A program made the translations under genes and the position numbers. DNA of 64,000 nt, from the NCBI RefSeq assembly GCF_006345805.1, contig NW_021832273.1:99733-163732 (forward strand). The letters are read 5' to 3'. The stretch is from Octopus sinensis (lineage: Eukaryota). The notes beneath the pieces were generated by a model. That model was not told where the DNA came from, ran no database searches, and saw nothing but the letters and a program-made list of their open reading frames with translations. This document shows positions 16,137 to 57,666 of this stretch, in pieces (the stretch's first letter is position 1; every line of letters begins with the position of its first letter).

Positions 16137-16149
16137 CGAATTTTTCCTA

Positions 16150-16299
16150 ATGTCTGGACGTGGTAAAGGTGGCAAAGGAGGAAAGAGTGGTGCAAAACGA
16201 TTTCGAAAGATATTAATTGACAATATACAAGGAATTACTAAGCCAGCAATAAGAAGACTATGTCGAAGAGGGGGTGTTCAAAGAATTTCTGGAAAAATT
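16150..16299 (+). pseudogene. H4: Histone H4 codons 1-50 fused in frame to family A' ORF1
   Basis: Identical except R>Q to the start of H4 at 39004; only ~12 nt of H4-like 5'UTR upstream and no H4 promoter. Confidence 0.92.
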
Positions 16300-19200
16300 C
16301 ATGCAATTACAAGATTGGCTCGAGGAGGACCTCTTCCCAACGAAAAGGTTCCTGATGCGGACGGTTGGCATACCGTGGGGAAACCCAAACGTGTTGCCAG
16401 CCGTCCTTTTAATAGTTTAGGTACTGGGTGTGTGTCTGCGCAGGTAGATGCACACCCAAAGAAGACTGCTCGCGCCGGGGGTAGAATTACCTTCGGCGTG
16501 GTGGCTAGACTAGAAGTCTTTCCCACCAGTGGAAAGGCCTCGGTCATAAAGATCCTGGGGACGCTTGACTCTATACAGCCATCTAGGCGGTATAGAGTCC
16601 TGAAGAGGGAGCCCACCCAATTCCTGCTTGGGTGGGAGAAGAAGGAGGACTTTTTCAGCTTTAAAGGAGAGCTGGAGAAGTCCAGCCCGTTCGGTCCTGG
16701 CATGCATCGGCTTGTCAGGATTGAACGAAAGGTAAGGCAGGTAAGAGTCCTGCTCCTCGGGGTCCCCCGGGACTTCGAGGATAATGACCTTTTAGGACAC
16801 ATACAGCGGGAGTACCCCAGTGCCTCTGCCCTTGCACGCTTCAAGCAGGGTAACCGCCCTCTTGAAGTGGTGGAGGTCATCCTGGGATCTCATGCGGAAG
16901 CCGAGCGCCTAGTACTTCTGGGTACTAGGATCGGCTACGTCAGGCTTCGTGCTGTCCGGCCCCGCCCGAAAGCCACCCAATGCTTTCGGTGTCAGGGGTT
17001 CGGACACATAAGCACGAAGTGTCCGGAGAAGGCGAAATGCCTAATCTGCGGTGGGGAGCATGGTCGCAAGACATGCCCCTCACCATCTATGGTGAGGCAG
17101 TGTGTCAACTGTGGTAAGTTAGGACACACTGCCAACTTCAAGGGTTGTCGTAAGTTCAAGGAGGCAACCCGACAGGTTGGTGGGGATGTAATCCCGAAGG
17201 TAAGTCGCCCCCCTAGCGTCGCGGCCCCCGCGCAACCAACCGGCAAACAGGTAAAGCAGGCCAAACCTCCCAAGTCCGCTTGGGTGGCGAGGCCTGTGAA
17301 GCCTGCAAGCCACCGCACCCCTAGCGTCGCGGCCTCAGCGCCAAAACCTGGCAAACAAGCAAAGCAGGCCAAACCTCCCAAGTCCGCTTGCGTGGCGAAG
17401 CCTGTGATGCCTGCAAGCCACCGCACCCCCAGCGTCGCGGCCCCCGCTCCACAACCTGGCAAACAGGCAAAGCAGGCCAAACCTCCCAAGTCCGCTTGGG
17501 TGGCGAAGCCTGCGAGCCACATTGCTAGCGGGTCGGTACCGCCGTCGCCGACAAAGCTGGCAAAGCGGGTGAAAGCATCCGAGTCAGCTCGGATGCCGGA
17601 AGCCTGCAATGCCCTCCGAGTCGGCTACAGGTGACACCGCCCAGCAAAACCTGGGGCCGAAAAGGCTTCCTCCATACGTGGAGATGCCATTGCACTCACC
17701 CCCTTGCGAGCGTGTGCCGCAGGACAGTGTTAGTCCTGCGGACATCCTGGTGGTCAACGAAACAAAGTTAAAGCAGGATCGGTACGTAGTTGATGGCTAC
17801 AACTGCTGTCACATACCCTGGAAACAGGGGTCAACATGTGGCACTGGAACTAGCCTCTTATACAAGCCGTACCTTGCTCTCCGGAGCTCAGGTTTATGTT
17901 CTTGTAGCCTATGTGAATTCCTCCAAGTGAGGATTCGCATAGGTAATTTAACATTTTACCTAGGGGCGATGTATTCGAAGAACTTTACGGCGTGTTCTTG
18001 GCACGTACGGGAGTTCTTTGGAAAGCATCCGAAGGCGATGGTCGTTGGGGACCTGAATGCCAAGCACCAAGAGCTCGGTTTCAGGGTAACCAACGCGCAT
18101 GGTTTGGCTCTCAAGACGCTGGTTGAAGACCTCGGGTTGGAAATCAGATCTTCAAGCGAGCCAAACCACATCGATTCGCGGGGAGGACAAGACTGGCTAG
18201 GCCTTGCTCTGGTCAGCCCCGGGATGCTAAATTGGGTTAGTAACACAATCTTATTGCCTGATATTGGGAGCGACCATCTGCCTCTATTGCACGAACTCCG
18301 TGAGCCAGTTCCTCAAAGGGCCCCAGGATACTTTGACCTCCGGTCCGGTTCCTGGGCCAACCTGGAGAGGTTCATGGCCAGCAGGTTGCCCTCACTCCTG
18401 GTGGGGAATACCTGCGCCAACATACGAGAGTTGGAGGCGTTAGATAATGGAATCAATGCTGCCCTGTCTGATTATATGCGAGATAATTTCAAACAGAACC
18501 CAGTACAGGGCCAGGCACATTCCACGCTCCCGTACCGGGTGCTAAATAAAATTAGATTCAAGCGCCGGCTGTCCAGACTGCGGGACAAATGCGTCTACCA
18601 GGAGAACCGTGTTTGGTTTCGCGGCTGGATCAGCCGGATTCAGAGGGAGATCCGGAGGGAAATCCGTGAACACGAAAGTTCACGGTGGGAGCGGGCCTGC
18701 CAAAGAGTGGACCCGCGCTTTCCGGACTTCTGGAAACAACTGAAGAGCCTGTCGGGGAGAGGGGAGGCAAAGTCAGTGCGCCTTAAGCGCTCTGATGGAA
18801 CCCTCGTCTCGGACCCGGTTGAGGTGGCTGATATATTTTCAACCCACCTCAACAACATCTCGGGAACTGACGGAAGTCAGTTCGTAGAGACGTCGTCTTT
18901 TGTTACTATCCAGGAGGTATTGTCTTGGGACAAGCGCTGCCAGCTGGACATATCAAGGGTCGATGCAGGCGAAGTTTCCGAAAGGGAGATCCTGGCAGCG
19001 ATCTCCCGAAGTAAGAACACCGCGGCGGGGCTAGATCGGATCCCTATGTCCATCTTCAAAAAGGCCCCGCCGTTGTTGATCACGGCCTTACAGGTTTTGT
19101 TTAGCGGGAGCTTGCGACTTGGGATGATTCCTTCCAGGTGGAAAGTGGCTGAGGTAATCCTCATTGGAAAACCTGGGAAGCCTCATGAAGTCCCCGGGGG

Positions 19201-20400
19201 ATATATGCCCATTTCCTTGCTTCCCGCTATATCTAAAATCCTAGAAAGGATCATGCACCGAAGGCTCCTGGAGGAGCTGACGGTGGTTGACGCCCTCCCG
19301 GAGTTCCAATGGGGCTTCAGGGAGGGTCGTTCATGTGGAGACTGCTTGTGGAAGGTGTCTTCCGAAATGAAGAACGCCCTCCAGAAAAGGGAGTGTGGTA
19401 TGTTAGTTAGTCTTGACATAGAAAAGGCCTTCGACTCGGTGTGGCACGACGGCCTGCGGAGTTCCCTCGCCACGTGTGGGGTTTCTCCGTGTCTAAGGCG
19501 CTGGCTGTCGGGGTTCCTCGAATCTCGCGGTCAGGTCGTGCGACACCAGGGGGTCTTTTCTAAAGTCGCAACAGTCTTTCGCGGGGTCCCTCAGGGTTCT
19601 GTGCTGAGTCCCACACTGTTTAATATCTTTATGGCCTCTGCACCTATGCCAGTCAATGCTCGTACTGGAATGGTGATCTATGCAGACGACATTATCCTCT
19701 GGGATCAGTCGATGAAACCAGAGTGTGCGTGTCGTAGGCTACAGGTTGCTGTGGATGAACTTGTAAACTGGTGTGGGAGTAGGGGTCTAAAGATGTGTGC
19801 GGACAAGTGCAGTGTCCTTAAAGTCTGTAAAAGGACGAGGGGTTACACTAATTTTATCCCTAGGTTATCACTGGACGGGTCAGCGATCGCTGTAGTTGAT
19901 CGGACGATCTACTTGGGCATGGTCTTCAAGCAGTCAGGTAAGTTCGATGATCACATTGCACGTACTAAAATGCGTGCAATGCAGCGATTAGGCGCGTTGC
20001 GTGCTTTCCACTTGAGGAGAGGTGCCTGGTTCCGTGTGTTCAACGCCATGGTGTTACCCGTGTTAACCTATGGCGTGCACGCTTGGCACTTCTGCGAGGA
20101 CAGGGAGAAGTACGTTGACGCGCTTAAGAAAGTAAGAAGACGAGCCATCCGGCTAGCCTATGGCTTAGGATGGCGTGATGAGCTCTCCAACGCCCAGGAA
20201 TTGTCCCTCAAAGGCCTTCCTGAGGTCCTGGAGAAGATAATGACTGGGTGGCAGGTAAGACGGTAAGTCCTAACCTGTGGTTGTGTAGAGAGGCGAGCGT
20301 GTGTGCTGGACCGAAAAGGCAGGAATGCCGAAGGTCTCCTTATGTTACCTCACTAACAGCCTCTCTAACTAATTATTTAAAATGAAAATTTTCCTTCCCA
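16300..20400 (+). mobile_element. Family A' LINE (Jockey/I/R1-group-like): 5'-truncated ORF1 with 3 CCHC-type knuckles, ORF2 APE-RT (ORF 17609-20266)
   Basis: [26 protein letters not shown]; GDLNAKH, SDHLP, QGSVLSP, YADD; 3' end abuts GAACTTGCAAA. Confidence 0.93.
17211..17520 (+). repeat. 108-bp (36-aa) coding tandem repeat, about 3 copies, in A' ORF1
   Basis: Units start at 17211, 17319, 17427: [34 protein letters not shown]. Confidence 0.9.
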
Positions 20401-20411
20401 GAACTTGCAAA

Positions 20412-21886
20412 AACAGAATTGTTGTGAGAATCCAGCTGCATGGTAAAGGAAAATAAAGAAAAAATGGTCAAGAATAAACAAAATCTCGCATCAATCAAAG
20501 CTTGCTCCAAAGTTCAAAAACGAACAGCGGCCAAGCCACAGCCCTTTTGCGAACCTGAATATCCCACCGAACATCCGAACCCTACTGTGGCTCAAAAACA
20601 CAGTGAGACCCAATTCTATCAGACGACAACTGAGGCTAACAGCTCAAACCTCACATATTCTCTGAGTATCGAAAACTCGGCACTTGGAAAGATCAAGAGG
20701 TTTAACCTCCTCTCCAAGTCTCCAACTGCTTCCAAAGCCCGGATAACCTTACAGAAGTCCGGCACCTTCATTCTAAAATTCAGTTCGCCAGAGGATGCTG
20801 CTGCGTTCAAAGCAGAGCTGACTAAATCGAATATGTTTGGCGAAGGCGGCCATAAACTTGCCTCAATAGCTGAGAAGGCCTCAGTCTTGGTCCTTAAAGG
20901 AATCCCTCATTGGATCTCGACAGAGGATCTTAACCTCCACTTGAGAGAAAGTCTAGAATCGGACTTCAAGTTCGAAAGATTCTCTCGCAATGGAACCGAC
21001 ATGCCTATCGGCAGACTCACGCTGGATTCCAGAGCCGAGGCCAGCACCCTCATCCGCTTTGGAATAACTGCGGGCTTCAGCCATATCCGCTGCGAATGGC
21101 ACAAGCCCTCAGCAACGAGATGCTTCCGTTGCAATCAGTTTGGACATACGTCCTACAGATGCTCCGAAAAACTCCGTTGTCTCCTCTGCGGTAAAGAACA
21201 CAGGCACCAAAACTGCCCGAGTTCCAAGCCAAAACCGAATGTCCCAGCTGCAAAAACTTGCATTAATTGCAAGAACACTGGGCACTTGGCGTGCTACGGT
21301 GGATGTCCATCTGCCAAAGCAGCAACAGCAGCCTCAAGGGCTGCGAAGAGCCCACAGACAAAAAGCCCAGTACGCTGGGTGAAAGCCGAACCGATAAAAT
21401 CAGTCTGGACAAAAGCGGCTCCCCGAAGTCCGTCCAAAGTCGATGTCTCTACTCAGACGTCGCCGGCCCCCAGCACACTCACAAACTCGAAGACAACCAC
21501 TAATGAGTGCCATAACTCAGAAGTGGTCCGCTCGGCTGTCCCTCATAAGAGGAGAAAAACCCACCGTGACAAAGCTTTGTCACAAAGAGGTCCCCACTCG
21601 GATCAGGACCTACACAACAGAGATTCCCAACTGGAATGCTTCCGCTGTTGTGTAGGAGCCCTGACCCTACTTGGAGTGGATATGGATATGCTGCAAGAGC
21701 TCCTGCTAGAAGGGAGCAATTCAGCAACATAGCCACCATTAACTCTGGCTCACGACAGATGAATTGGACGCAAGCTCAGAAGAGTTCAGTTGTCTTTGCA
21801 TCAGTCTCGTCCTATCACCGTCCTTAATTCCTGTCACTTTCTCTCTCTCTGTTAATTACAATAAACTTCATTCATTCATTCATTCA
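20412..21886 (+). mobile_element. ORF1-only non-autonomous family B element (intact 430-aa ORF 20440-21732)
   Basis: Gag-like CCHC ORF followed directly by the family B 3'UTR, AATAAA and (TTCA)n; flanked on both sides by GAACTTGCAAA. Confidence 0.93.
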
Positions 21887-21897
21887 GAACTTGCAAA

Positions 21898-23582
21898 TGG
21901 TGTTTCGTGCAAGCTCAGTTCTGCAAGATGAAGTATTTATTGGATACAATACAAATCAAACGAATTGGCCCCTTGTGTCCCTATTCCTGACAACCTCGCT
22001 AGAGTCACTCATACATCGGGCAGCAGTTCACACGACAAAACAAATTGAAAGTCTGGACCAGCTCGTTAGGAATCTCATCAACACTTCTTTGGAGAAGTTT
22101 TCCAGGAAAAAGTTCATTAAACACTCTGGTGGTGGGACTCATGAACTCGACGACACAGTAGTGAGTCTCCTGAAAGAAAAGGCAAGATACCAGAAGAGGC
22201 TACGCAGATGTTTTGACCCAACAGACTGCACACGCCTACGAGCAATGATTTCCTCTCTTAAAAAGAGGATCGACAAAAGGTCTAAAGAAAACATTGACTC
22301 AGCTTGGAGATTGGAATGTTCTAAGCTTAATCGAAGACACCCAAGTTTCTGGAAGGCATATAATCGCCTAAAGGAAACGGAATGCAAAGGAGATGAAATC
22401 AATTTAACCACAGAAAATGGCTATGCCATCAACCGAGACGATGTACCTGACGCTTTACGTCAACAACTGGCGAAAATTCAAGATGTCGACCCGAGCTGTT
22501 TTGTCCCGACAGATATAATGGACGAGAAAAAGAGGGCAATAGCCTCTGCGAAAATGTCCCCTGGTCGACTTTGTCACGCAATCACCCTGGACGAAACCCT
22601 ACTAGCAATTAAAAGATGCAAGGACAACGCCTGTGGAAACTGCTTTGACCAACTGGAAACGCAAATCTCGAGGGCCCTTACACACAAGATGGGGATGACA
22701 GCTGTTTGTCTGGACATTTCAAAGGCGTTCGACAGCGTTTGGCACCTAGGCCTCCTGGAAAGGATCATCAGTATCCATCCGGGGCAAAGGATTGTCAAAT
22801 GGCTAGAGAATTTCTTACACATGCGAAAGTCTTTTATCAGATGTGGTAACCGGACCTCGGATACAATCAATCTAAGGAGGGGAGTGCCTCAAGGGTCGGT
22901 CCTGAGCCCTCTACTTTTCAACTTATACGTTGCCGACATCCCGAAACCAGTAAATTCGGAGTTGGAAAAGGCTGAGGGAATATGTAGCGAGGGTTGAGTC
23001 TTGGGCAATGGAGAAAGCCCTCTCTATAGCACGAGACAAGTCTACCATCACGTGGATTTCTAAAACTCGGAAAGGAAGAGAACCACTTCTGGAGACAATG
23101 GGACTAAGAATCTCTGACGACCTACGCTACCTTGGGGTAACGATCGGGGCTGACGGATCGTTCCTTAAGTTCGTGGAATCTAGAAGAAGGAAATGTTCGG
23201 GGATCCTGAGAAGCCTTATACGCTTCCATCTCTCCCCAGACACCTTTCTCTTCATCTATAAGGCGACTGTAGAACCAGTCCTTATCTATGGACATGAAGG
23301 TTGGTACCCTACAGACGAGAGAAATCGCATAATCACCAAACTGGAGAAAACAAGGCGCTTTGCGATTAAACTGGCGTATAAGCTACGGCTTGATCAGGAT
23401 CTCCCCAGAGAGCTAGACGAACAAACTCAAAACATTCGGCAAGTCCTCTGCTCATTGCAAAGGGCATGAGAAGTGAAAAGGAAAGCAAGGAGGAGGCATT
23501 CGGTGTCTCGATTTTAAATAAAACCTTTTCTAATAACTCTTCTCTTTTGGTTGCTAAGTTAATAAAATCTGTTCGTTCGTTC
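21898..23582 (+). mobile_element. Family D LINE, 5'-truncated ORF2 with internal deletions, (TTCG)n tail
   Basis: CLDISKAFDSVWH, GVPQGSVLSP, RYLGV, KLAYKL; flanked by GAACTTGCAAA. Confidence 0.88.
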
Positions 23583-23593
23583 GAACTTGCAAA

Positions 23594-23881
23594 CTAGCCT
23601 ATATGCTAAATCCATGGGAGCCTGTCCCAAGCTGGGCGGAGAGCAAGTCTCCAGAGCTACGGCAGGCCATCGAGGCTTCTATCCGAACTTTTCGGAAACG
23701 CTCTAAAGTGGCTGACCTATTCATCGATCGTGGAGAATAGCAGGTGTCCCTGCTCATAGACAGACAAAGCGGACGAACCATGGAAGAGCTCGAATGCCCA
23801 AAGCAATCGTCTCGTCAAAATTATTTTCCGCACTAAGTTTCTGTCTCGTTTCTTCTTTCTTACAATAAAATTCTTCATTCA
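23594..23881 (+). mobile_element. Family E LINE 3' fragment
   Basis: Translates LAYMLNPWEPVPSWAE...SIRTFRKRSKVADLFIDR*, homologous to the B and C C-termini; AATAAA-TTCATTC tail; flanked by GAACTTGCAAA. Confidence 0.85.
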
Positions 23882-23892
23882 GAACTTGCAAA

Positions 23893-24154
23893 GATGTTCT
23901 ACTGGAGTGCTTCCGCGATTATGTAGGAGCCCTGAAGATATCTGGAGTGGATATGAATATGCTGCAAGAGCTCCTGCTAGAAGGAAGCAATTTAGCTACA
24001 TAGCCACTATTAACTCTGGCTCATGACAGATGAATTGGACGCAAGCTCAGAAGAGTTCAGTTGCCTTGGCATCAGTCTCGTCCTATCACCGTCCTTAATT
24101 CCTGTCACTTTCCCCCTTTCTCTGTTATTACAATAAAATTGATTGATTGATTGA
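23893..24154 (+). mobile_element. 3' fragment of an ORF1-only family B variant with (TTGA)n tail
   Basis: Same ORF1-stop/3'UTR junction; flanked by GAACTTGCAAA. Confidence 0.88.
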
Positions 24155-24165
24155 GAACTTGCAAA

Positions 24166-26218
24166 GAGCTAGACGAACAAACTCAAAACATTCGGCAAGT
24201 CCTCTGCTCATTGCAAAGGGCATGAGAAGTGAAAAGGAAAGCAAGGAGGAGGCTTTCGGTGTCTCGATTTTAATAAAACCTTTTCATATAACTAGGGCAA
24301 CCAGAAATATGACCTTAAAAAAGTTAAATATGACCGTAAAATATATGACTTTATGACTTTAAAATTCTAAAATATAACTTAAAAATATTAAAATATGACC
24401 TAAAAAATCAAAATATGACCTATCGAATTTTGATTTTTAGATATTCTGAATTCGAAAATATGAAAAAATTAAACATTTCAATCAATGAATTTATTATAAT
24501 ATTGCATCATATAATATTTAATATTTTCTGGCTTGAAGTTTCTATCCTTTTCGAGCAATTTATTCAGCATAGAAAAGCTTCTTTCTGCAGATATTGATGT
24601 TGAAGGACATTTCCATAAGTAAATAAATGTTTCTTGAGAAATACTAGAAATTCTAGCATTTTTAATATTCGTCCATGGTAATCGTCCATTCTAGTATTAC
24701 TTATCCGCTTTAAAAAATACTTGTTGATGTCACAATTATCCTCACCAAAATTAACGGAATCAATGAATTCAATTGCATCTTTAATTGTATAAAATTTTTT
24801 TTGGCATTTTCTGATTTCATCAATAATAGGGTTGTATGAAGCCATTAACTCTGCCAGATTTTTCTCCAAATTTTCAGAGCTAACAGCATTTTTCGCATTC
24901 ATCACAATCTTTCCACAATTTGGATAGGATAAGACAATTTCGCGAACTCTTGAAAGATGTCGACTATAATATTTTGCTGCGTCCAACCAGCTGCCCCATC
25001 TTGTTAGAACAACATCAGGTGGAAGTCTAATAACTGTAAAAAGATTCCTCCGGGAGGGATTTTTTACAATCGACATTTTGATAGACGAGATTAAGTCGTC
25101 AATATATTTATAGTGTGCTCTAATCTTTAATGCACAATTGTGCAGAAGATGAGCAAAACAAGTTATATGAATCATTTTAATATATACATAACCTTCAATG
25201 TACTCGCTGCTAAAGTCATATAACGGGCAGCATCAGAAATAAATAATAAAAAATTTTCCCTTTTTATATCATAAATTCGAATTGTGTCATCCACAATTCT
25301 ACAAATTGCAGATGCATCACAAATTTCAATTTCCAAACAATTTAATAAATAAATTTTTCAGGACTTTCAATAGTCCCACAAAGAACGTTAACAAATTTCT
25401 GTTTATTGATTTCCGTTTCATCAACAAGTATGAATATATCTTTTCCAGAAATAATTGTTTTAAGCATTTCAATCAATTGATATTGCAAATCTGGAACTAT
25501 ATTTCTGCACCAACTTTCGCTGGGAACAGTAAATCCGAGATTATTAAAAAAATTAATAAATTGTGCATTTCTTATTTTGTAAAGAGGTATATTCGCCTTC
25601 GTCATCATTTCGACTAAGCAAATTCCGAAATTTTTCTTTGCTTCAAGTTTCGGAAGAGTGTTGAGTTGCGTTTGAAATTTTGTCTGTTCCTTTTTATGCC
25701 GGGTAGTTTCCCTGTGCTGCACCACATTAAACGTTTTCGTAAAATTAACAAAAACTGAGCATTTCAAACAAAATAAACGTCCAGCTGAATCAATCTGAAA
25801 TTCAGACGGGTATCGTTTAATTATTTTATTTAACTTTTGATTGTTAGATTGCTTTTGTTTCGGCATGTAAAAATCTATAATATTTAAGCGGCCAACTACC
25901 AAAACGTGTGAAAACGTGTTATTGTCAAAATTTAAACAAAGATTAATAAAAATATATGATTTAATAAATATAAATATGACCTAACAAAAAAAATATGACC
26001 TAAAAAAATAATATGACCTAACGGCATAAAATATGACCTATAAGACCTAAAAAAATTAATAAAACTATTAAAAAATATAATAATAGTTTATTAATTATAG
26101 AAATAACATCAATATGATCAATAAAAAATAATATGACTTATATGACTTTTGGTTGCCCTACATATAACCCTTCTCTTTCGGTTGCTAAGTCAATAAAATC
26201 TGTTCATTCATTCATTCA
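24166..26218 (+). mobile_element. Family D 3' fragment interrupted by a hAT transposon, (TTCA)n tail
   Basis: 24166-24292 plus 26161-26218 reconstruct the 3'UTR seen intact at ~23408-23582. Confidence 0.88.
24293..26160 (-). mobile_element. hAT DNA transposon (second family), frameshifted transposase
   Basis: TIRs TAGGGCAACCA; 8-bp TSD CATATAAC; subterminal AATATGACC repeats; LFCLKC, ANIPLYKIR, DET, HITCFAHLLH, TRWGSWL. Confidence 0.92.
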
Positions 26219-26229
26219 GAACTTGCAAA

Positions 26230-26335
26230 TTTTGTGGATAATGGCACCTAAAGTTAGCATAAAGGCCCGAACGGATTTGCTTTTAGCCTTTGACCGTACT
26301 TTTCCTCCTTTTCCTCTTGAAGACATTATACTCTG
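26230..26335. pseudogene. H2B 5' remnant (+, ATG 26241) joined tail-to-tail to an H2A 5' remnant (-, ATG 26326)
   Basis: Near-exact matches to H2B start at 44404 and H2A start at 38848. Confidence 0.88.
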
Positions 26336-29189
26336 AATGAATTGAATTAAGTTTATTGTAAATTAACAGAGAAAGAGAAAGTGACAGGAATTAAGGACGG
26401 TGATAGGACGAGACTGATGCCAAGGCATCTGAACTCTTCTGAGCATGCGTCCAATTCATCTGTCGTGAGCCAGAGTAGGTTCATTAATTTTTGACGAGTG
26501 CAGAGAGTTACCGGTCGATAAACAGGTCGGTCACTTGGGATCTCCTCCGAAAAGACCGGATAGATTTCTCAATGACCTGTCGTATCTCCAGGGACCTGTT
26601 CTCCGCCCAGCTTGGGACGGGGCCTCGTGGGTCAAGCCTATAAGCTAGCTTCAGCGCGTAGCGTCGGATTTTCTCGCATTTCCTGTAAATTTTCTCGAGA
26701 TTTTTCGAGTAGTACCATGCTTCCATTCCGTACAGCAAGGTGGGTAGGATGGTTGCATGGAACACAAAGAGGAATGTCTTAGGATCCAGATGCATGCTTC
26801 TTAAGAGGCAGAGAGCCGCAATGGCTTTTGCTCTCTTTTTCTTTACATGCAGACGGTAGCCCGAGTTAGCGTCGATCGTAAGCCCCAGGTAGCGTATGCA
26901 GCTGGGGCGCCCAATTTCGGCTAGGGGCCCAGAGCTCTGATCTGATGACTTTTTCGAGTTGATTTGTAGGAAAGCGGATTTATCCATTGCTAACGAGAGC
27001 TGTTTGCTGGCGCACTACTCCTTTATTACCTCAATGTAGGTGAAAAGCCTCTTTTCTGAGGCCATCACATCTTTTGAGGTGTCAAGGATAAGGACGTCAT
27101 CAGCATAGAGAAGTAGATTTGTCCGAGGGTCCCGGGGCAAAGGGAAACTGCTCATAACCAGATTGAAAAGAAGTGGACTGAGGCAGGACCCCTGCGGAAC
27201 CCCTCTTCGGAGTGAAATATCTCTTGAGCGGAAACCAGATTCGGAGATAAACGAGTATCTTTCGGAGAGAAAGCAGCGCAGCCAGAGGTAGAGTTCCGCT
27301 GTAGGCACACAGAGTTGGATCCTTTCCAGTAGGTCTCTGTGCCAGACGGTGTCGAAAGCTTTTGAAATGTCCAGACATACAAGAGATAGAGTTTCTTTAA
27401 ATTCCATTGCTCTCGAAATCATGGACTGTACCGTTATGAAACAGTCACTGCAGCTACGCCCAGAACGAAAACCCCATTGCTGCGTTAGCAGCACTCTCTT
27501 TTCTTCGGAGTGGAAGTCAAGGCGCTTGGCCATGATTTTTTCCATCAGCCTTGAGATAGTTGGGATTAGGCTTATGGGACGATAGCTGCTAGCGAGGTTC
27601 ACAGGCTTCGCAGGCTTTTTGATCATCCGGACCTCTGAGATTTTCCATTTTCCCGGCACATGGCCCCACTTGAGACTTGCCGTAAACAGATCCGCAAGGA
27701 ACACATGTAGGTCTTCGGAGGCTTCCTTAAACAGCCGCATCGGTATTTTGTCGTGGCCTGGTGCGTTGCCTTTTGACGAACGGATGGCCCAGGTCACCTC
27801 TGCAGTGGTGATCGGTTGATGTTCCGACGACAGTGCGCACGGCAGTGGCTCCGACTCCCTGCCTTGCGGCGTTTTTGGATTGGCCTCCTGGATAATGGCC
27901 AGGTGTTCTGCGAAAATGTTCGGGATTTCCTGTGGCGAGGCGGGCATACCAAATTGGTTGCACAGCCTCGGGGGTGAGGATTTTCCTTCGAGGTTAGCCA
28001 CTTTGCGGAAACAGTCCCAGAAATTTGGGTTTCTGTAGTCTAAGTTTTGACAAGCCTTCTGCCATTTCCTGGCAGTTTCCAGCTTTGTCACGACTTGAAC
28101 TTCATAGCCAATTTTCGAGATCATGTTTTTAAGTCTACCCCTGTCAGTGGGGTCAACACAGCGTTTGAGTTTGTTTCTCAGCCGCTTTCTCTTATTGAGG
28201 AGAAGTTTCACCTTCGTGCTTAGAGTAGATCTTCGTAGGCGGTCAGCACACGGCACTGTTCCGTACGATTTTAGATAATGGCGCATGAAATTTGTTAGCT
28301 CATCGCTTGCGTAGTCGATGTCGCTGGCAGTGTTGTAGTATGTAAGGTGAGTGTTCACAAGTAGGAATGCACTCATGGAGCTTCTATAGTGTGGCCAGTT
28401 GATTCTTGAAAGACTGTAGCCTGTGGATACGTGTTCTTGTTTAATAGAGCTAGAGTGAATTTTGATCTCCATAGGAAGGTGATCACTTCCGATATCGTCA
28501 AGCACAGTAGGCTTTTCCATAATGGTAGCGATCGAGTGAGAACAGATGCACAGGCATAGGTTGTCCTCGCCGTAGGGCGATTGGTGGTTCGGCACTTCAG
28601 ATGTCCTGACGAAAACACCAAGTTTGTCAGTGATCTTCTTCAGTGTTCGACCATCCTGGTTGCTTAATCGACATCCAAACGCCGTATGCTTCGAGTTTAG
28701 GTCTCCGATAAGAAGGCAGTGAGCGGTATTTGAGAAGAAATCGTTAATCAGACTGGTGCAGGGAGGAAGATATTTGCAGTATATTCCACCGATTTTTAGC
28801 CAGAAAGATTCTGTTTTCACCTCAAGGGATAGGAATTCACACAGTGTCCCCTCGATGATAGTGAGGTTACGGACTTTGAGATTTTCGCTGTAGAAGATGC
28901 TCGAACCAGTCCCAGGCGTAGAGCAGCTACCCCATTTAAGATCCACTGACCGGTAGCCTGGGAGCTGGTAAGAGTCATCTTCTTTGAGCTTCGACTCGTT
29001 GACGACAATAATGTCTGGATGGCCGCTGTTCACCATCTCAACGAAGTCGTGATGCCGTCTCTTGATAGAACGGGCATTCACAGCGATTATTTTGATCGTG
29101 GCTATGTTGGTGAATTACTCCTTTCTAGCAGGAGCTCTTGCAACATATTCAAACTTATTCCAGCCTTGGTCAGGGTATCTACCCAACGG
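26336..29189 (-). mobile_element. Family B LINE, 5'-truncated within ORF1, near-complete ORF2 (27015-29081 plus 26508-26987), inserted at the H2A start
   Basis: APE and RT motifs; 12-bp TSD CAGAGTATAATG (26324-26335 and 29190-29201 on the minus strand); (TTCA)-type tail. Confidence 0.93.
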
Positions 29190-29201
29190 CATTATACTCT
29201 G

Positions 29202-29320: not shown

Positions 29321-29332
29321 TCTGAATCAGTT

Positions 29333-30832
29333 GCATCGTCTGAATCGTCAGAAGGGCTGCGAAGAGCCCACAGACAAAAAGAATCCAGTTGCATGGTAAA
29401 GGAAAATAAAGAAAAAATGGTCAAGAATAAACAAAATCTCGCATCAATCAAAGCTTGCTCCAAAGTTCAAAAACGAACAGCGGCCAAGCCACAGCCCTTT
29501 TGCGAACCTGAATATCCCACCGAACATCCGAACCCTACTGTGGCTCAAAAACACAGTGAGACCCAATTCTATCAGACGACAACTGAGGTTAACAGCTCAA
29601 ACCTCACATATTCTCTGAGTATCGTAAACTCGGCACTTGGAAAGATCAAGAGGTTTAACCTCCTATCCAAGTCTCCAACTGCTTCCAAAGCCCGGATAAC
29701 CTTACAGAAGTCCGGCACCTTCATTCTAAAATTCAGTTCGCCAGAGGATGCTGCTGCGTTCAAAGCAGAGCTGACTCAATCGAATATGTTTGGCGAAGGC
29801 GGCCATAAACTTGCCTCAATAGCTGAGAAGGCCTCAGTCTTGGTCCTTAAAGGAATCCCTCATTGGATCTCGACAGAGGATCTTAACCTCCACTTGAGAG
29901 AAAGTCTAGAATCGGACTTCAAGTTCGAAAGATTCTCTCGCAATGGAACCGACATGCCTATCGGCAAACTCACGCTGGATTCCAGAGCCGAGGCCAACAC
30001 CCTCATCCGCTTTGGAATAACTGCGGGCTTCAGCCATATCCGCTGCGAATGGCACAAGCCCTCAGCAACGAGATGTTTCCGTTGCAATCAGTTTGGACAT
30101 ACGTCCTACAGATGCTCAGAAAAACTCCGTTGTCTCCTCTGCGGTAAAGAACACAGGCACCAAAACTGCCCGAGTTCCAAGCCGAAACCGAGTGTCCCAG
30201 CTGCAAAAACTTGCATTAATTGCAAGAACACTGGGCACTTGGCGTGCTACGGTGGATGTCCGTCTGCCAAAGCAGCAACAGCAGCCTCAAGGGCTGCGAA
30301 GAGCCCACAGACAAAAAGCCCAGTACGCTGGGTAAAAGCCGAACCGATAAAATCAGTTTGGACAAAAGCGGCTCCCCGAAGTCCGTCCAAAGTCGATGTC
30401 TCTACTCAGACGTCGCCGCCCCCCAGCACACTCACAAACTCGAAGACAACCACTAATGAGTGCCATAACTCGGAAGTGGTCCGCTCGGCTGTCCCTCATA
30501 AGAGGAGAAAAACCCACCGTGACAAAGCTTTGTCACAAAGAGGTCCCCACTCGGATCAGGACCTACACAACAGAGATTCCCAACTGGAATGCTTCCGCTG
30601 TTGTGTAGGAGCCCTGACCCTACTTGGAGTGGATATGGATATGCTGCAAGAGCTCCTGCTAGAAGGGAGCAATTCAGCAACATAGTCACCATTAACTCTG
30701 GCTCACGACAGATGAATTGGACGCAAGCTCAGAAGAGTTCAGTTGCCTTTGCATCAGTCTCGTCCTATCACCGTCCTTAATTCCTGTCACTTTCTCTTTC
30801 TCTGTTAATTACAATAAACTTCATTCATTCAT
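29333..30832 (+). mobile_element. ORF1-only family B element (430-aa ORF 29393-30685) inserted upstream of an H3 start
   Basis: 12-bp TSD TCTGAATCAGTT (29321-29332, 30833-30844); near-identical to the copy at 20412. Confidence 0.93.
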
Positions 30833-30863
30833 TCTGAATCAGTTCTGCCTGAAATAAAAAAAT

Positions 30864-30881: not shown

Positions 30882-31584
30882 GTTTTAATTAAAATTATCT
30901 TAATATTTAGTTACTCAATTATTAATAGAAAACATAATAAATTTTTGCACGTGTGAGCACTCTTTTGACATACCTTGTTGTCCTGTTACATTATTTGGTC
31001 AATCTTTATTTTTTTATTTAATTGGATTAGAAGGAATATTTTGCAGATGTAGTTTCTTTTAATTAATAAATTATCTGAAATTTCATCATTTTGTAATATT
31101 TGCGAGTTTATTCTTTCAATCTGTTTATATCGCTTATTTGAAATCTTCTCATTTATCTTTATTCATTGAATTTCACCTTATTTTTTGATAGAAAGTTCTA
31201 TTCTTTATATTCTTATTGCAAAATTTTATTTATTTGTTCCCGGATTTGGCGATCTTGTATTTTAGCGCCCTAAAATCTAAAATGATCAATTTCTACCAAA
31301 TTTTAATCATTATTGTTATATTTTTTTTTCTAGATTTTTTTAAACTGAACACGAATTTAATTATTGCTATATTATTTTTATAAATTATTATGTCACAGGC
31401 CTAGGGTGTACCGAGCCTAGCTGGTTATACTTTCGGACTTGGAAAAAAATTCAAAAAAAATATTTGAATTCTATCTCAAAATCTATTTTGTCAAGATAAA
31501 TATTATAAAATGACAAATAACAGAACAGAATTTTTTATTGTAAAGAACAAGAGACTGGTACATAAATATTTTTGACCAACAAAA

Positions 31585-31636
31585 TTTCGGAATGATACTT
31601 TTTTATTATATAAATTTTTTCCCTTCAGAACTTGCA
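31585..31636 (+). promoter_or_regulatory. Probable H2B promoter ending in the GAACTTGCA target sequence
   Basis: TTCGGAATGATAC motif, TATATAAA at 31607, then TTCAGAACTTGCA; an H2B 3' fragment lies downstream at 32464. Confidence 0.65.
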
Positions 31637-32320
31637 GAATGTTTGATCAATTATTGCAGCCAATTTATCAACATCACGGTCAGAAACGTAGCCATCAGCC
31701 CACGTTTCGGCTTTTTTCTTCTCAATGGATTTATAGTTTAGCAGACACATCGCTGTCCAGCGGTCCAGGAATGTCTGCCTGGCTTGGATGGCCGATGATG
31801 GTATGACTGAGAGTCTAAGTGGAAGTAGACACTTGAAAACCGCGAATTGTATCAAACCCTCAGGCCGTCTTTGTGTTGGCTCAACCCTCTTATCCCCATA
31901 AGTGATACCGATTGACGTGCCTACAAATTGACATAAGTTAGGCTGTGTGTGCTCAAGACTCAGGTCCTTCTTGAAAAAGACAATCTGATCTATCTCGACT
32001 TCGCAGGCTACACGTAACGTCTTGATGTATTCGTACAGAAAAGCAACAGCTAGGCCTTCATCCCATGAACTCGAATTTTCTATTTTCTCAGCTAATGAAT
32101 ATATAGGTGAATTTTCCATGTACGTAGTGTTGATGGAAACACCAAGCAGACTGTTTGCTATGTCTCCCCAATCTTCCTCACTTGGGGGGTTGTGGAACAT
32201 CGTTACACCACGGCTGACGATCATGCCATTCTCGCGTGGTGTCCTTTTTGATTTTGCAGTTCCAAACTTGATTAAGTCATATTGACCAATATTCTCGGAC
32301 ATATTACTGATTTTGAACTG
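31637..32320 (-). other. Putative endogenous viral element: N-terminal half of a rhabdovirus-like nucleoprotein (ATG 32302)
   Basis: About 222 stop-free codons; FLYEYIKTLR ~ VSV N YLYGALKDIR and SDRDVDKLAAIIDQTF ~ NDSNYTKIVAAVDMFF in the same order (recalled sequence, by eye). Confidence 0.5.
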
Positions 32321-32460: not shown

Positions 32461-32463
32461 TGC

Positions 32464-44378: not shown

Positions 44379-44403
44379 GGAAAACTTGCAAATTTTGTGG
44401 ATA

Positions 44404-45261: not shown

Positions 45262-48200
45262 ATGTCGAAGTGGAGGTGCTCCGACGGTCCAGATGGTTCA
45301 AGGAGAGCCCTCCAAAGTTGAAGAATCCACCGAACCCCCGAGGTCTGACCTTAACAGCTCAGGCCTCACATTCACTCTGAGCATTAATAACCCGGCACTT
45401 GGAAAGATCAAGAGGTTTAACCTCCTATCCAAGTCGCCAACTGCCTCCAAAGCACGGATTACATTACAACGCTCAGGCTCCTTCACTCTTGAGTTCAGGA
45501 ACCCCGGAGATGCTGATGCATTCTCGGCTGAGCTTGCAAGATTGAACCCGTTTGGCGAAGGCGGCCATAAACTTGCCTTAGTTACTCCGCAAAAGTCAGC
45601 ACTAGTCCTAAAGGGGATTCCGCGATGGATCTCAATCGGGACCTAGAGCTGCACCTGAAGGAAACCCTCAGTTCGGTGTTCGTTCTCGAGCGATTCACGC
45701 GAGATGGTCTCAACATCCCAGTTGCTAAGCTGACGCTTGACTCACGAGCTGAAGCTACTTCTTTGATCCGCACCGGAATCACAGCTGGTTTCTGCCTTAT
45801 CACCTGTGAATGGTTCAGACCTCCTGTCGTCCGATGTTTCCATTGTCAGAGATTCGGACACCTGTCCCGTAACTGTCAAGAAAAAGCCCGGTGCTTATAC
45901 TGCGGCAAGGACCACGACCGAAGGGAATGCCCAGGCAGCAAACAAAGTCTAGTGGAGCCCTGCGGTCGGCATTGTATCAATTGTGACCGCCCCGGCCACC
46001 TCGCTTCGTATGGTGGATGCCCGACGGCCAAAGCTGCAACAGCAGCTAAATGGGCCGCCCGCGCAGAAGCAATGCCTCGGTCTCCTAACCCAACCCGCAT
46101 GGTAATGGTAAAAGCTAAGCCGGTCACGCCTATCTGGAAAGTACGGCCGCTAATAACCCCGTGTGTGGCGGACGCCCATACCCAGACGACGCAAGTCGTT
46201 GAGGTTGGTGCGCAGAGCATGCAGGCCCCTGTCGCCGAGGCTGTGAAACCGAGGCCCGTCAGCCCAATAAGGAACGGTACTCAGCAGGCCAAAACGCAGG
46301 CGAAGGTAGACTCTCACAACAAGGATGCTCTGTTGGAATTTTACCAACGCTGTGTCGACGCACTGCTGAAACTGGGAGTCAAACCCAAGAAGCTAGAAGA
46401 GCTCCTATCAGAGAGGAGCTCGCCAGCAAAATGACCACGCCACTAAAAATCATCGCTGTGAATGCCCGATCTGTCAAGAGACGGCACCTCGACTTCGTTG
46501 AGATGGTAAACAGCGGCCATCCTGACTTAATCGTCGTCAACGAGTCTAAGCTGAAAGAAGGTCAATGCTTCGAATTGCCAGGATACTGCTCCCTTGACCT
46601 GAAATGGAGAAATAACTCTACGCCTGGGACTGGGACGACTATCTACTACCTGCAAAATCTCAAGACACGTAACCTCAAGACTATCGAACGGAACCTATGC
46701 GAATTTATCTCGCTAGAGATTAAAACCCAGCGCTTTTGGTTAAAAGTGGGCGGAATATATTGCAAAAACCTTGCTCCATGCATCGGTCTTATCGAAGACT
46801 TCTTTGTCAGCTCAAATCATTGCCTCCTCATCGGTGATCTAAACTCCAAACACACGGCATTTGGTTGTCGCGTGACCAATCGGGACGGCCGGTTACTTGA
46901 AAGAGCGGCAGGTAGGCTAGACGTCTGTGTCCGCACCTCGAAAGCCCGGAACCACCGCTCCCCATTCGGCTGGGACAACCTTTGCGTAGCACTGAGCTCT
47001 CAATCAGTCGCGAATCTTATGGGAGAACCAATAGTACTCGACGATATTGGGAGCGACCACCTGCCAATGCAGGTCTGTGTCCACGTCTCGGTAGACACCC
47101 AAATCCGTTGCCCACCACGATACACCCTTTCGAACATCAACTGGGCGCACTACCGTTATGCTCTGAACTTGTTCTTTCGCAACAACGTACGCCCAGGCAG
47201 CTATCAATCTACCTCGGACATCGACAACTCGGGCGCCGAATTGACGGACTTCATGCGACTCTACTTGGAAGCCCACGCTAGGAGGGTGCGCCCAACTAGC
47301 AAGGGCATTACACATCAAAACCCCAAACTTCTCCAACTTCTGGGCGAAAAGAAACGCCTGCGAAACAAGCTCAAACGCTGTGCCGACCCAACGGACCAAG
47401 GTACCCTAAGGTCGGAAATCTCTCTGCTCAACCACAAAATTGAACTCACAAGAAAGAAAGATCTTGAGAGGATGTGGAAGAAGGCCTGCTCTGGTCTTAA
47501 TCACAGGAACCCAAACTTCTGGATAGCCTACAACAGACTCTCTAATCATCTCGTGAACTCTCCGGCACCAGAATTATCGAACTCAGCTGGAATGCCTGCG
47601 TCGGTGGAGGAAATCCCCAACATATTTGCTGATCACCTGGACCGTCCTCTGCCGGACCATGAGGATCGCTGGGGAAACTCACATGCCAGTCCTATAGACC
47701 AAGCAGACTCCCTATCTGTTGATCATCACCCAATCACCGCCGCTGAGGTGACCTGGGCCATCCTCTCGGCGAGGGACAACGCACCGGGGCATGACATGCT
47801 ACCAATGAAAATGTTCAAAGAAGGCCCTCCGGAACTGTCTGAGTTTTTGGCACGCCTCTTCTCGGCTAGTCTTCGCTGGAGCCACGTTCCAAGTGCCTGG
47901 AAAGTCGCCGAAATCCGGATGATCAAGAAACCTGCAAAACCAGCTAACCTTGCCAGCAGCTATCGACCCATCAGTCTAATACCAACGATCTCGAGGCTTA
48001 TGGAAAAAATTATGACCAAACGCTTCGACTCCTTCGCTGAGCAGAAATGCGTGCTTCTGCCCCAGCAGTGGGGCTTCCGCTCGGGGCGCAGCTGCGCCGA
48101 TTGTTTTCTGATTCTCCAATCGATGGCTTTGAAAGCAATGGAGTTCAACGAAACTTTATCTTGCATCTGCCTTGACATCTCTAAAGCATTCGACAGCGTG

Positions 48201-49203
48201 TACCACCCAGACCTATTGGACAGGGTTCGCAGTTGTGAGCCAACGAGAGAGGCATTTCTCTGGCTGAATTGCTTTCTTTCTAACCGTATCTCCTTTGTGT
48301 CCCAGTCGGGCTTCCACTCCAGAGATATACATCTCCGAAGGGGTGTCCCGCAGGGATCCAGTCTCAGCCCGCTGCTGTTCAACCTTGTGATGAGCAGCTT
48401 CCCTTCCTTCCCCAATCCGCGGACAACTTTCCTCTTGTACGCTGATGACGTCCTCATTATGGATATTTCAAAAAGCCCCGCACTCTCGGAGCACCGTCTT
48501 TCCAGCTACATCGGAATGATAGAGACCTGGTGTCGGGGTAAACAACTATCCATTGCTATGGACAAGTCGGCGTACCTTGAAATTAACTCACGGCGCAAAT
48601 CGAGGCAAGAGCCTGAGATTCTCAGAAGACTTCCCCGCCCGAGCCACATTCGCTATCTGGGCTTGACGGTAGACTCTAACTCGGAGTACTTACTGCACAT
48701 CACCCAAAAAAGGAAAAAGGCCGTTGCGGCCCTTCGCTTCCTGAGGGGTATGCATTTGGCCCCCGACACTTTTCTGTTTGTCTTTCGCGCGACGATTCTC
48801 CCAAGTCTCTTGTATGGGATGGAGGCGTGGCACTATTCAAACCAATTCGGAAAAATATTGAAAAAATGTGAGAAGATCCGTCGCTATGCGTTAAAGCTAG
48901 CGTACAGATTGGATCTACGCGCCCCGCTACCCAACTGGGCAGAGGAGAAATCTCCACTAATCGAGAAAGTCATCCTTGATTCCATCCGAACTTTTCGTCG
49001 GCGGTCTCAGGTGACCGATCTTTTCGTGGATCGCGTCTGAAATTCAATCAGAGAGTGACTCTTCAAAAACCCGGCTCATATATTCCCTTAGGACGAATCT
49101 CGGCAGAGCTCGACTGTCTTCGCAGTCGTCTCGTTTAACCTCGTCCAACCTTTTTACTTAGTCTCTGTTTTACTTACAATAAAACTTTCCATTCCATTCC
49201 ATT
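45262..49203 (+). mobile_element. Family C LINE, full length: ORF1 45293-46434 (frameshift near 45640), ORF2 46431-49040 intact (869 aa), (TTCCA)n tail
   Basis: Splits ACTAGCCT^GAAACTG of the H3 5' region with an apparent 3-bp TSD CCT. Confidence 0.95.
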
Positions 49204-49235
49204 CCTGAAACTGTCCTGTCTGAAATAAAAAAAAT

Positions 49236-57642: not shown

Positions 57643-57666
57643 AAAAACTTGCAAATTTTGTGGATA

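Follow-up and report, generated by a model that had tools for sequence, protein, structure and literature searches.

Six non-LTR retrotransposon copies stand head-to-tail at a single H2B site in the histone gene cluster of Octopus sinensis, and we conclude, with a probability of roughly 85%, that they accumulated by serial insertion at one base, with an 11-mer regenerated by target-site duplication. The window analyzed here, by which we mean the whole 64,000-nucleotide stretch (positions 99,733 to 163,732 of contig NW_021832273.1), contains six exact copies of this 11-mer, GAACTTGCAAA, all on the forward strand and all where an earlier note on this DNA had placed them (Table 1); no further exact copies were found elsewhere in the 64 kb. 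The chance expectation for an exact 11-mer is ~0.03 per 64 kb, counting both strands. When up to one mismatch was allowed, we obtained 15 matches compared with 2.7 +/- 1.7 in shuffled sequences, and none of 100 shuffles reached 15. Directly upstream of every copy, as the note had also observed, lies an element end, namely a 3′UTR containing AATAAA and ending in a short tandem-repeat tail of (TTCA)n, (GTTC)n or (TTGA)n, and the six units, unlike one another in sequence, span 5.8 kb. The sixth copy runs into TTTTGTGGATA-ATG GCA CCT AAA, the H2B 5′UTR and start, which are also present at 44393, 57656 and 63101. The earlier description of the stack as leading into an H2B 5′UTR and ATG is thus accurate, but it does not extend to the gene as a whole, of which a 36-bp stump (26230-26265) is left; an inverted H2A 5′ end follows (26264-26335, which matches 38786-38857).

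The stack members are those that the note had described, A′, the ORF1-only element B, D, E, a B variant and a second copy of D, and they represent at least four families (A′, B with its variant, D and E). A′ retains an ORF1 that begins at an H4 ATG (16150-17634, 494 aa) and carries a CCHC knuckle, an ORF2 of 885 aa (17609-20266) with APE endonuclease and RT domains, and a tail that ends in aaaattttccttccca. B encodes 430 aa (20440-21732) with three CCHC-type knuckles (CX2CX4HX4C-type motifs, identified by eye), directly followed by its 3′UTR and (TTCA)n tail. Its 3′UTR is common to element G (26336-26476), which is the autonomous partner of B. D has neither an ORF1 nor an endonuclease domain, its RT is internally damaged and its tail is (GTTC)n, while the second D copy (D2) is interrupted by a nested insertion that separates 24166-24293 from 26164-26218. 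Pfam searches identified Exo_endo_phos, Exo_endo_phos_2 and RVT_1 in ORF2 of A′, A and C, RVT_1 alone in the truncated D, and zf-CCHC in ORF1 of A′. The hallmarks of APE-type LINEs are present, with an APE-like domain followed by RT and a gag-like ORF1 with CCHC knuckles, and the families show variable 5′ truncation, a defined 3′ end and a flanking target-site duplication. Although ORF2 of A is only ~33% identical in amino acids to those of C and G, these are mutual best matches (394-402 bits, compared with 204-268 bits for the nearest database protein), and the PDB matches of the elements (L1 ORF2p, R2) are distant and uninformative. A, A′, B/G, C, D and E are a clade of APE-endonuclease/RT non-LTR retrotransposons that colonizes the histone gene cluster.

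Table 1. Coordinates of the H2B stack and of further insertions at histone genes in the window.
Feature	Positions	Strand	Match or remark
H4 leader (~12 nt of 5′UTR + codons 1-50), in frame with A′ ORF1	16138..16299	+	98% identical to H4 at 38994-39153
Element A′, leftmost in stack	16300..20400	+	88% identical to A copies
11-mer copy 1 (GAACTTGCAAA)	20401..20411	+	
Element B, ORF1-only	20412..21886	+	98.7% identical to B2 at 29380-30834
11-mer copy 2	21887..21897	+	
Element D, 5′-truncated within ORF2, RT remnant	21898..23582	+	RVT_1; 40-52% aa identity to C and G
11-mer copy 3	23583..23593	+	
Element E, 288-bp 3′ end of an autonomous G-like family	23594..23881	+	97% identical to 3′ ends of longer copies in L003, L008, L009
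11-mer copy 4	23882..23892	+	
B-variant 3′ fragment (ORF1 end + 3′UTR), (TTGA)n tail	23893..24154	+	~90% identical to B 21630-21880
11-mer copy 5	24155..24165	+	
Second D copy (D2), last ~183 bp of D	24166..26218	+	alignment with D 23406-23582
Nested hAT-like DNA transposon, 1.87 kb	24294..26163	.	TIRs TAGGGCAACCA...TGGTTGCCCTA; 8-bp duplication CATATAAC
11-mer copy 6, runs into H2B 5′UTR	26219..26229	+	
H2B remainder: 5′UTR (TTTTGTGGATA) + ~first 8 codons	26230..26265	+	matches 44393-44428
Element G (26336-29190) at H2A 5′UTR start	26325..29201	-	CAGAGTATAAT at 29191-29201 (promoter side) and 26325-26335 (gene side)
Element B2 at H3-variant 5′UTR start	29322..30844	+	CTGAATCAGTT at 29322-29332 and 30834-30844; left promoter intact
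H2B-type promoter (CGGAATGAT motif, TATA-like box), then GAACTTGCAGA, then foreign sequence	31570..31638	+	apparently an occupied H2B site, promoter-side half
A-family tail adjoining AAACTTGCAAA + H2B gene	44382..44392	+	same junction at 57645 and 63090 inside segmental duplicates
Element C, between H3 promoter and H3 5′UTR	45262..49206	+	H3 ORF 49236-49646

The 11-mer is host DNA, the first 11 bp past the end of the H2B promoter. Empty H2B sites exist elsewhere in the assembly, on contigs other than this one (L003 -10030, L003 -838 and L013 +959); there, GAACTTGCAAA occurs once, between promoter and UTR. Other histone genes carry different 11-mers at the equivalent position. The note had named two readings that would undo its interpretation, and neither survived. 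The 11-mer is not the 5′ end of the elements themselves, as the sequences that follow it are non-homologous, mostly 5′-truncated, and start at different places within their families: B at its position 1, D in the middle of ORF2, E at its last 288 bp, the B variant at about position 1219 of B, and D2 at the last ~183 bp of D. Nor is it a spliced leader in concatenated cDNA, as the genome itself carries one copy at each empty site, joined without a break to the promoter and to the H2B UTR; a search of the window for an SL or snRNA family found none.

At other histone genes the same families show what an insertion at such a site looks like. The order promoter, 11-mer, element, tail, same 11-mer, gene was found at H2A, an H3 variant and an H2B variant, with exact 11-bp duplications of CAGAGTATAAT (element G), CTGAATCAGTT (element B2) and GAACATACAAA (two loci, L008 and L009), respectively, and in each case the promoter lies to the left of the element and the gene to the right. 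An empty site matching the target of B2 was found in L007 (+12860 and +15888). Since the same 11 bp flank single insertions on both sides, they represent an 11-bp target-site duplication, and these duplications together with the matching empty site support serial insertion with target regeneration, as the note had proposed. In the stack, all six copies are the local variant, with G at position 1 and A at position 10, whereas paralogous sites carry AAACTTGCAAA, GAACTTGCAGA or GAACATACAAA, which fits local duplication rather than imported sequence. There is no 11-mer upstream of A′, on the promoter side of the stack, because A′ starts with an H4 leader beside an inverted B fragment, so that only the other loci show the complete duplication architecture.

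We propose that the stack was built by ordinary target-primed reverse transcription. The element nuclease would nick the bottom strand immediately upstream of the 11-mer, reverse transcription would start at the short tandem-repeat tail, and the top strand would be cut 11 bp downstream, so that after repair the 11-mer would be present on both sides of the element. As the target site survives each insertion, the next element could use it, and six events involving at least four families would leave six 11-mers. If new copies always entered at the promoter-proximal 11-mer, the oldest insertion would be the one beside H2B and the youngest would be A′, and the order of the stack would presumably be a chronological record. 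The stack does display an age gradient: at its left end both ORFs of A′ are intact, as is the ORF of B, which is 98.7% identical to B2, while at its right end D is damaged and D2 bears the nested transposon.

The same families occupy further histone genes. In our own tally of ~230 kb at loci chosen for carrying histone genes, 25 of 32 independent 3′ junctions fell at canonical sites, defined as the 5′UTR start of H2A, H2B, H3 or H4; three of the seven non-canonical junctions are within histone promoters or a short way upstream of them, and A′ junctions were canonical in only one of four cases. Tails of A adjoin the 5′UTR start of H2B, H3, H2A and H4, E adjoins H2B, an H2B variant and H3, and B/G adjoins H2B, an H3 variant, a long-form H3 and H2A. 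Independent copies thus share one nucleotide position in a repeated host gene, as expected of an R1/R2 lifestyle. The (TTCCA)n tail of element C adjoins CTGAAACTGTCC, and no target-site duplication was seen at this element.

Two other explanations concern how the stack came to be. It could be an assembly artefact, with reads from single-insert H2B loci joined at their shared 11-mer and tails, and the setting invites caution: the stack is known from one unplaced long-read contig of a highly repetitive region, histone units on this contig are duplicated at 97-99% identity, and indel noise is evident in the assembly, in that frameshifts differ between near-identical A copies. However, an overlap of 11 bp falls well short of what would mislead a long-read assembler, the six differing units fit within 5.8 kb and so inside a single long-read span, and comparable head-to-tail arrangements occur on an independent contig, L007, where an A tail is followed by an H3-leader A copy and another A tail by GAACTTGCAGA and then another element. 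We consider an artefact very unlikely. Somewhat less remote, though still improbable, is an origin from cDNA concatenated in a single event or a few, in which RNAs read through into the 11-mer and RT jumps from a truncated 5′ end to the next 3′ end. Three of the six members are indeed very short 3′ fragments (183-288 bp), and template switching occurs in this system, judging from filler or carried sequences at 5′ junctions such as that of B2, which includes an internal B piece and a second GTCTGAATC. Read-through RNA, however, cannot supply the 11-mer found on the promoter side of single insertions. Moreover, E sits at GAACATACAAA or GTCTGAAATAA elsewhere but is followed in the stack by the local GAACTTGCAAA, and uniformly local 11-mers are likewise at odds with such concatenates.

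A third alternative accepts serial insertion and differs in how the site would be chosen, with element endonucleases that are sequence-specific for GAACTTGCAAA or its core, as R1 is for its 28S site, and a stack that results from the regenerated recognition sequence. In its favor, the same phosphodiester bond was used in all six stack events, H2B-type sites have a common core, (G/A)AAC(T/A)T(G/A)CAAA, and one off-target A insertion lies in TTCGGAATGAT, loosely like TTCG|GAAC. Against it, the same families use the same 11-bp stagger at CAGAGTATAAT (H2A), CTGAATCAGTT or GTCTGAAATAA (H3) and ATTTAGAGAAT (H4), and we saw no consensus by eye at either nick, the common feature being the distance from promoter motifs; we regard it as unlikely, if less so than the two explanations above. 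At least five unrelated 11-mers serve the same families as targets, which does not appear compatible with one endonuclease-recognized target sequence. What these targets have in common, regardless of local sequence, is a constant spacing relative to promoter elements: the insertion point lies 40-42 bp past a conserved promoter motif, CGGAATGAT (the CGGAAT motif), and a TATA-like box starts at -20 to -23 from the junction (~22 bp), across H2A, H2B, an H2B variant, three H3 types and H4, with the distances for H2A and H3b counted by hand. At H2B itself the figures are 40-41 bp from the motif and 21-22 bp from the first T of the TATA-like box. From this promoter geometry and from the leaders carried by the elements, transcription would start at or within ~8 nt of the insertion point. 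The earlier claim that several families used the same nucleotide is correct as far as it goes but understated, since that nucleotide would be dictated by where it lies in the histone promoter rather than by the sequence of the 11-mer, a proposition to which we assign about even odds.

Element copies carry histone 5′UTRs and N-terminal leaders, and these leaders start 0-8 nt after the junction. ORF1 of A and A′ is in frame with histone N-termini, namely H4(1-50), H3(1-28) and H2B(1-30), and the consensus of nine A copies is a single 608-aa ORF that runs from an H3 ATG. No H4 promoter was found upstream of the A′ H4 leader, which is carried with the element; the same H4-A′ ORF1 junction occurs in L015 (18468-18908), there behind a native H4 promoter. 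The sequence arrangement suggests that an element at a histone site would be transcribed by the histone promoter, and that A and A′ probably initiate ORF1 at the histone ATG and with the N-terminal tail, which could provide a translation start, a nuclear-import signal or a histone-locus address. More tentatively than for promoter position as such, we picture a LINE clade that reads the histone initiation region via promoter-bound machinery, cuts 11 bp apart around the start and leaves the site reusable, with copies driven by the histone promoter and with histone tails captured by A and A′. No DNA-binding or tethering domain was recognizable by Pfam in the element proteins.

Targets of target-specific LINEs are listed in PMC4640811, PMC5035012 and PMC3706591, and our full-text literature searches returned no report of LINEs targeting histone genes or a Pol II start site. 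If this wider picture is true, these elements would form a guild of retrotransposons specific for Pol II start sites, the first of its kind, the histone-like beginnings of ORF1 would amount to histone-tail mimicry by a transposon protein, and the stack would grow from its promoter side like tree rings. ORF1 proteins that start with histone tails are unexpected, and the stacks, along with the in-frame histone leaders layered at the 5′ ends of elements, form an unusual ordered record of competing families. The question of mechanism is how an APE-type element would read promoter position across four unrelated local sequences. What is sought in safe-harbour insertion tools is likewise insertion of this kind, precise, reusable and beside a strong promoter within a redundant gene family.

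Known systems share single traits with the histone elements. Ty3 inserts at Pol III start sites, and Dictyostelium TRE5-A and TRE3 insert near tRNA genes. As in those cases, the insertion point here appears to depend on spacing relative to promoter elements or to a bound transcription complex, irrespective of local sequence, and the target is a safe multicopy gene class; Ty3 and the TRE elements, however, use Pol III genes (Ty3 by means of an integrase), whereas the histone elements use TATA-containing histone genes, an APE nuclease and a fixed 11-bp stagger. SLACS, CZAR and NeSL, which insert in spliced-leader RNA genes, likewise enter a few nucleotides inside the transcribed region of a tandemly repeated gene, where the host promoter drives the element, as it would here, but they rely on a restriction-like endonuclease that is sequence-specific for one gene, and the 11-mer described here is no spliced leader. 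HeT-A relies on RT provided in trans, and HAL1 is an ORF1-only LINE derivative; B, with its ORF1 alone and the 3′UTR that it has in common with G, resembles both. The HeT-A/TART telomeric arrays also place different families head-to-tail, but they attach to chromosome ends without nicking or duplication, and a telomere-type array was rejected here because the stack is internal to a gene cluster and has the 11-bp duplication at the borders of all its units.

Known target-specific LINEs occupy rDNA, snRNA, 5S, spliced-leader and tRNA genes, telomeres and microsatellites, and those of multicopy genes include R1 and R2 (28S rDNA), Keno (U2 snRNA) and Mutsu (5S), both of the Tx1 group, and Utopia (U2); R1 has an APE-type enzyme, makes a 14-bp duplication and forms tandem arrays. 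These are close counterparts of the histone elements, which are also LINEs in a multicopy gene family, inserted at one defined nucleotide with a fixed-length duplication, often 5′-truncated, and arranged in tandem copies through reuse of the regenerated site. Like the R1/R2 group, they would depend on transcription of the host gene. Unlike that group, they target Pol II protein-coding genes, namely those of all four core histones, at sites with promoter position but no common sequence to unite them; their tails are 4-5-nt tandem repeats, and the habit is common to several deeply diverged families.

Scanning the window for GAACTTGCAAA returned six exact copies on the plus strand, at 20401, 21887, 23583, 23882, 24155 and 26219, and no others; with one mismatch allowed there were 15 matches, compared with 2.7 ± 1.7 in shuffled sequence. 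Each of the six is immediately preceded by a 3′UTR with AATAAA and a 4-nt tandem-repeat tail, and the last (26219) continues into TTTTGTGGATA-ATGGCACCTAAA, the H2B 5′UTR and start. This matches exactly the earlier note, which had described six such 11-mers, each after an element tail and the last before the H2B 5′UTR and ATG. Using Pfam and self-comparison of the window, we defined the six units of the stack, which we label by LINE family (B is ORF1-only and G is its autonomous partner; B2 and D2 denote second copies).

Coordinates of the stack units and of 11-bp target duplications at other histone genes (L007, L008 and L009 are other histone-bearing contigs)
Feature	Element	Position	Description
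Stack unit	A′	16300-20400	Full-length; ORF1 494 aa with CCHC knuckle; ORF2 885 aa with APE endonuclease and RT
Stack unit	B	20412-21886	ORF1-only, 430 aa; 98.7% identical to second copy at 29380-30834
Stack unit	D	21898-23582	RT damaged, 5′-truncated
Stack unit	E	23594-23881	288-bp 3′ end, G-like autonomous family
Stack unit	B variant	23893-24154	262-bp 3′ end; ~90% identity to B
Stack unit	D2	24166-26218	Last ~183 bp of D, interrupted by nested element
Nested in D2	hAT-like transposon	24294-26163	1.87 kb; TIRs TAGGGCAACCA; 8-bp duplication CATATAAC
Duplication at H2A	G	Window 29191-29201 and 26325-26335	11 bp, CAGAGTATAAT
Duplication at H3 variant	B2	Window 29322 and 30834	11 bp, CTGAATCAGTT; empty site in L007
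Duplication at H2B variant		L008 and L009	11 bp, GAACATACAAA

Several further features were seen in and around the stack. The C-terminal part of A′ ORF1 contains a tandem ~108-bp duplication (17206-17515, ~90% identity) encoding repeated ...PSVAA(P/S)[22 protein letters not shown]... units, and the hAT-like element has degenerate minus-strand ORFs and many ATATGACC repeats close to both of its ends. Directly upstream of A′ lies an inverted, 5′-truncated B/G fragment (15854-16136, -), the tail of which adjoins the RT region of another LINE (14061-15607, -), making this one of the few non-histone junctions. At the other end of the stack (26230-26335), 36 bp of H2B start meet 72 bp of an inverted H2A start head-to-head, with neither gene intact, and thus two occupied histone 5′ ends stand back to back.

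We considered several origins for the 11-mer. It is not the 5′ end of the elements, since the stack units start at unrelated internal positions, and a spliced leader was ruled out by the empty H2B sites, where a single genomic copy, as AAACTTGCAAA, lies directly between promoter and UTR (L003 -10030, L003 -838 and L013 +959, on two other histone-bearing contigs). At other histone genes the same families show the full duplication layout of promoter, 11-mer, element, tail, identical 11-mer and gene, and its presence at H2A, an H3 variant and an H2B variant indicates that the 11-bp stagger is a property of these elements. The 11-mers of the stack might instead have been imported with read-through RNA, or have arisen by recombination between paralogues, but all six carry the same local sequence variant, which counts against both. 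The simplest account of the stack is therefore serial target-primed reverse transcription in which the site is regenerated each time; the earlier note's proposal that each insertion re-creates its target is supported by the empty sites, by the 11-bp duplications elsewhere and by the local variant, and the stacked-insertion feature is real. Separately, the T5C6-7 tail of A resembles 'atttttcactcca', and we dropped the idea that it is a captured H2B promoter because the same tail adjoins H3, H4 and H2A sites.

To survey site choice, we examined junctions across ~230 kb of histone-bearing contigs, comprising the window and L003-L015. In this set, A-family tails adjoin the first base of the 5′UTR region in H2B, H3, H2A and H4; E tails adjoin H2B, an H2B variant and H3; B/G tails adjoin H2B, two H3 types and H2A; C adjoins H3 and D adjoins H2B. 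After removal of segmental duplicates, 25 of the 32 3′ junctions were at histone 5′UTR starts, and three of the seven exceptions fell within histone promoters or immediately before them. Inspection of the sequences flanking the surveyed insertion sites revealed no consensus at either nick. Their common feature is promoter geometry: for all gene types, a conserved (T)CGGAATGAT motif starts 40-42 bp from the junction, and a TATA-like 8-mer starts at -20 to -23 relative to the junction, as determined by regex scan, with hand counts where the regex gave no match. We put at roughly one in two the probability that the target is set by position in the promoter and not by the sequence of the 11-mer.

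Common to the promoters of all four histone gene types is a (T)TCGGAATGAT(ACTTTTT)-like motif, which keeps a constant distance of 40-42 bp to the insertion point (for example, window 31579-31627, 38858-38900 (-) and 58470-58526, and L003); in the related L014 cluster the motif is different, AAATTTGG(A/G)(T/C)TT(C/G)(T/C)GGC(G/T)AAAAATTT. Histone leaders on retrotransposed copies start 0-8 nt downstream of the junction (39801, 16138 and, on contig L004, +7829), which places the probable start of transcription either at the junction itself or within the duplicated 11-mer. The elements also carry AATAAA or TAATAAAT 18-27 nt before the junction (e.g., window 44355-44381, 21865-21886 and 23560-23582), about where the native TATA-like box lies; that this signal might stand in for a TATA box in the unit that follows is pure speculation.

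Should the promoter anchor targeting, every newcomer would enter at the promoter-proximal 11-mer, and the array would therefore run from the oldest member, D2, adjoining H2B, to the youngest, A′. The condition of the members (A′ and B intact, D damaged, D2 with a nested transposon) fits this order, which is suggestive but not proof. The 5′ junction of A′ took away the promoter-side 11-mer, a loss that would have closed the site.

The A families also carry histone coding sequence. ORF1 of A′ starts at an H4 ATG, with H4 codons 1-50 fused in frame to give the intact 494 aa (window 16150-17634), and the same H4::A′ junction lies behind a native H4 promoter in L015 (18468-18908). Individual A copies have scattered frameshifts; a majority consensus built from nine copies over their first 1.95 kb reads as a single 608-aa ORF, H3(1-28)::ORF1, from the H3 ATG (copies with this leader are at window 39831, 52942 and 58558 and in L004, L007 and L009). 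A third leader type, H2B(1-30)::A, is likewise in frame (window -36832, L011 6670, L013 981). Plain insertion into coding sequence was considered for these H3, H4 and H2B pieces and is only part of the story: copies beginning at the UTR start without an upstream promoter (39801, 16138 and L004 +7829) show that the leader moves with the element, and the fusion to ORF1 is in frame in the family consensus. A, A′ and C have in common a 5′ motif (window 39915-39960, 16300-16335 and 45262-45300; in A and C, ...QLSA(L/I)R(R/N)LCRSGG...) that matches H4 codons 33-43 at 27-28 of 33 nt and follows an H3-like CAATTGTCTGCA. In L007, one C-type copy (-18698 to -18433) has two histone-like layers behind an H2B-variant ATG, all in frame, like growth rings of captured histone sequence. 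In our reading, transcripts driven by the promoter took up histone 5′ sequence in successive rounds, which would account for these leaders and layers.

Comparison of ORF2 proteins gave amino acid identities of 88% for A and A′, 59-67% for C and G, 40-52% for D with C and G, and ~33% for A with C and G. A and C/G are mutual best matches, at 394-402 bits compared with 204-268 bits to the nearest database protein. The nearest database relative, P0001 (31% identity), is a dispersed element found in two different non-histone contexts with no histone neighbours, and so the histone-site habit is not shared with it. Together with the mutual best matches, this makes the habit look old and clade-specific, in a comparison with a database that holds few eukaryotic transposon proteins. 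A PDB sequence search with the elements gave only distant L1 and R2 matches, and no clade was assigned.

The window, a histone cluster, is part of contig VCDQ01009797.1 in the Octopus sinensis assembly GCA_006345805.1, which publications on octopus genomes cite. Read in the direction of the window, the native gene order is H2B(+), H3(+), H2A(-), H4(+), as on VCDQ01010301.1 (L003), which is almost without transposons and has an H4 identical to that of the window. All four histones of the cluster are unusually divergent, with H3 79% identical to canonical H3 and its close relatives limited to O. sinensis entries and one Logan contig (L014, 93%). Rfam matched no family in the window, and no histone 3′ stem-loop was found there or, even at E ≤ 1, in L003 or L014; AATAAA follows the histone stop codons in all three. 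The source of the contigs may be an animal associated with the octopus and not the octopus itself, or they may hold an odd variant cluster. On one contig, a nearby gene model has an innexin Pfam match. The window H2B copies (44405-44751; also 57668 and 63113) differ from L003 -10008 by one inserted base pair close to the 3′ end (gcaaacacatgc versus gcaaaacatgc), which alters the C-terminus; either these copies are pseudogenes or the extra base is an indel error of long-read sequencing.

Other elements were found nearby. An unrelated LINE 3′ fragment with an RTE-like C-terminus (...GRPRSTLP...NRRAWTRMVQKIVS) occurs at window 39562-39800 and 52673-52912 and at L003 -1491, L003 -10815 and L007 -19242. 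It is preceded by ATTTAGAGAAT, the 11-mer that starts the H4 5′UTR, which suggests that this LINE, too, may once have used the H4 site. At window 31639-32463 and L007 8570-9394, promoter plus GAACTTGCAGA is followed by sequence of unknown nature, which contains a 246-aa minus-strand ORF (31625-32365) with no Pfam match and a short B-like ORF1 piece (32315-32460); beyond it comes the 3′ portion of H2B. A further retroelement (7640-10728), with overlapping ORFs, a weak PHD-finger match and an RT domain, is unrelated to the histone-associated families.

The larger finding, outside the coordinates of the earlier note, is a guild of LINEs that target the 5′ ends of all core histone genes, perhaps by position. 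Full-text searches of the literature returned no histone-targeting LINE. The lifestyle of these elements is that of target-specific LINEs of multicopy genes, such as R1, R2, the Tx1 group and Utopia, and their logic is that of position-specific elements such as Ty3 and TRE5-A; B parallels ORF1-only elements such as HAL1 and HeT-A. They differ from these known systems in their target class, Pol II histone genes of all four types, in using it without a shared target sequence, and in their histone-tail fusions.
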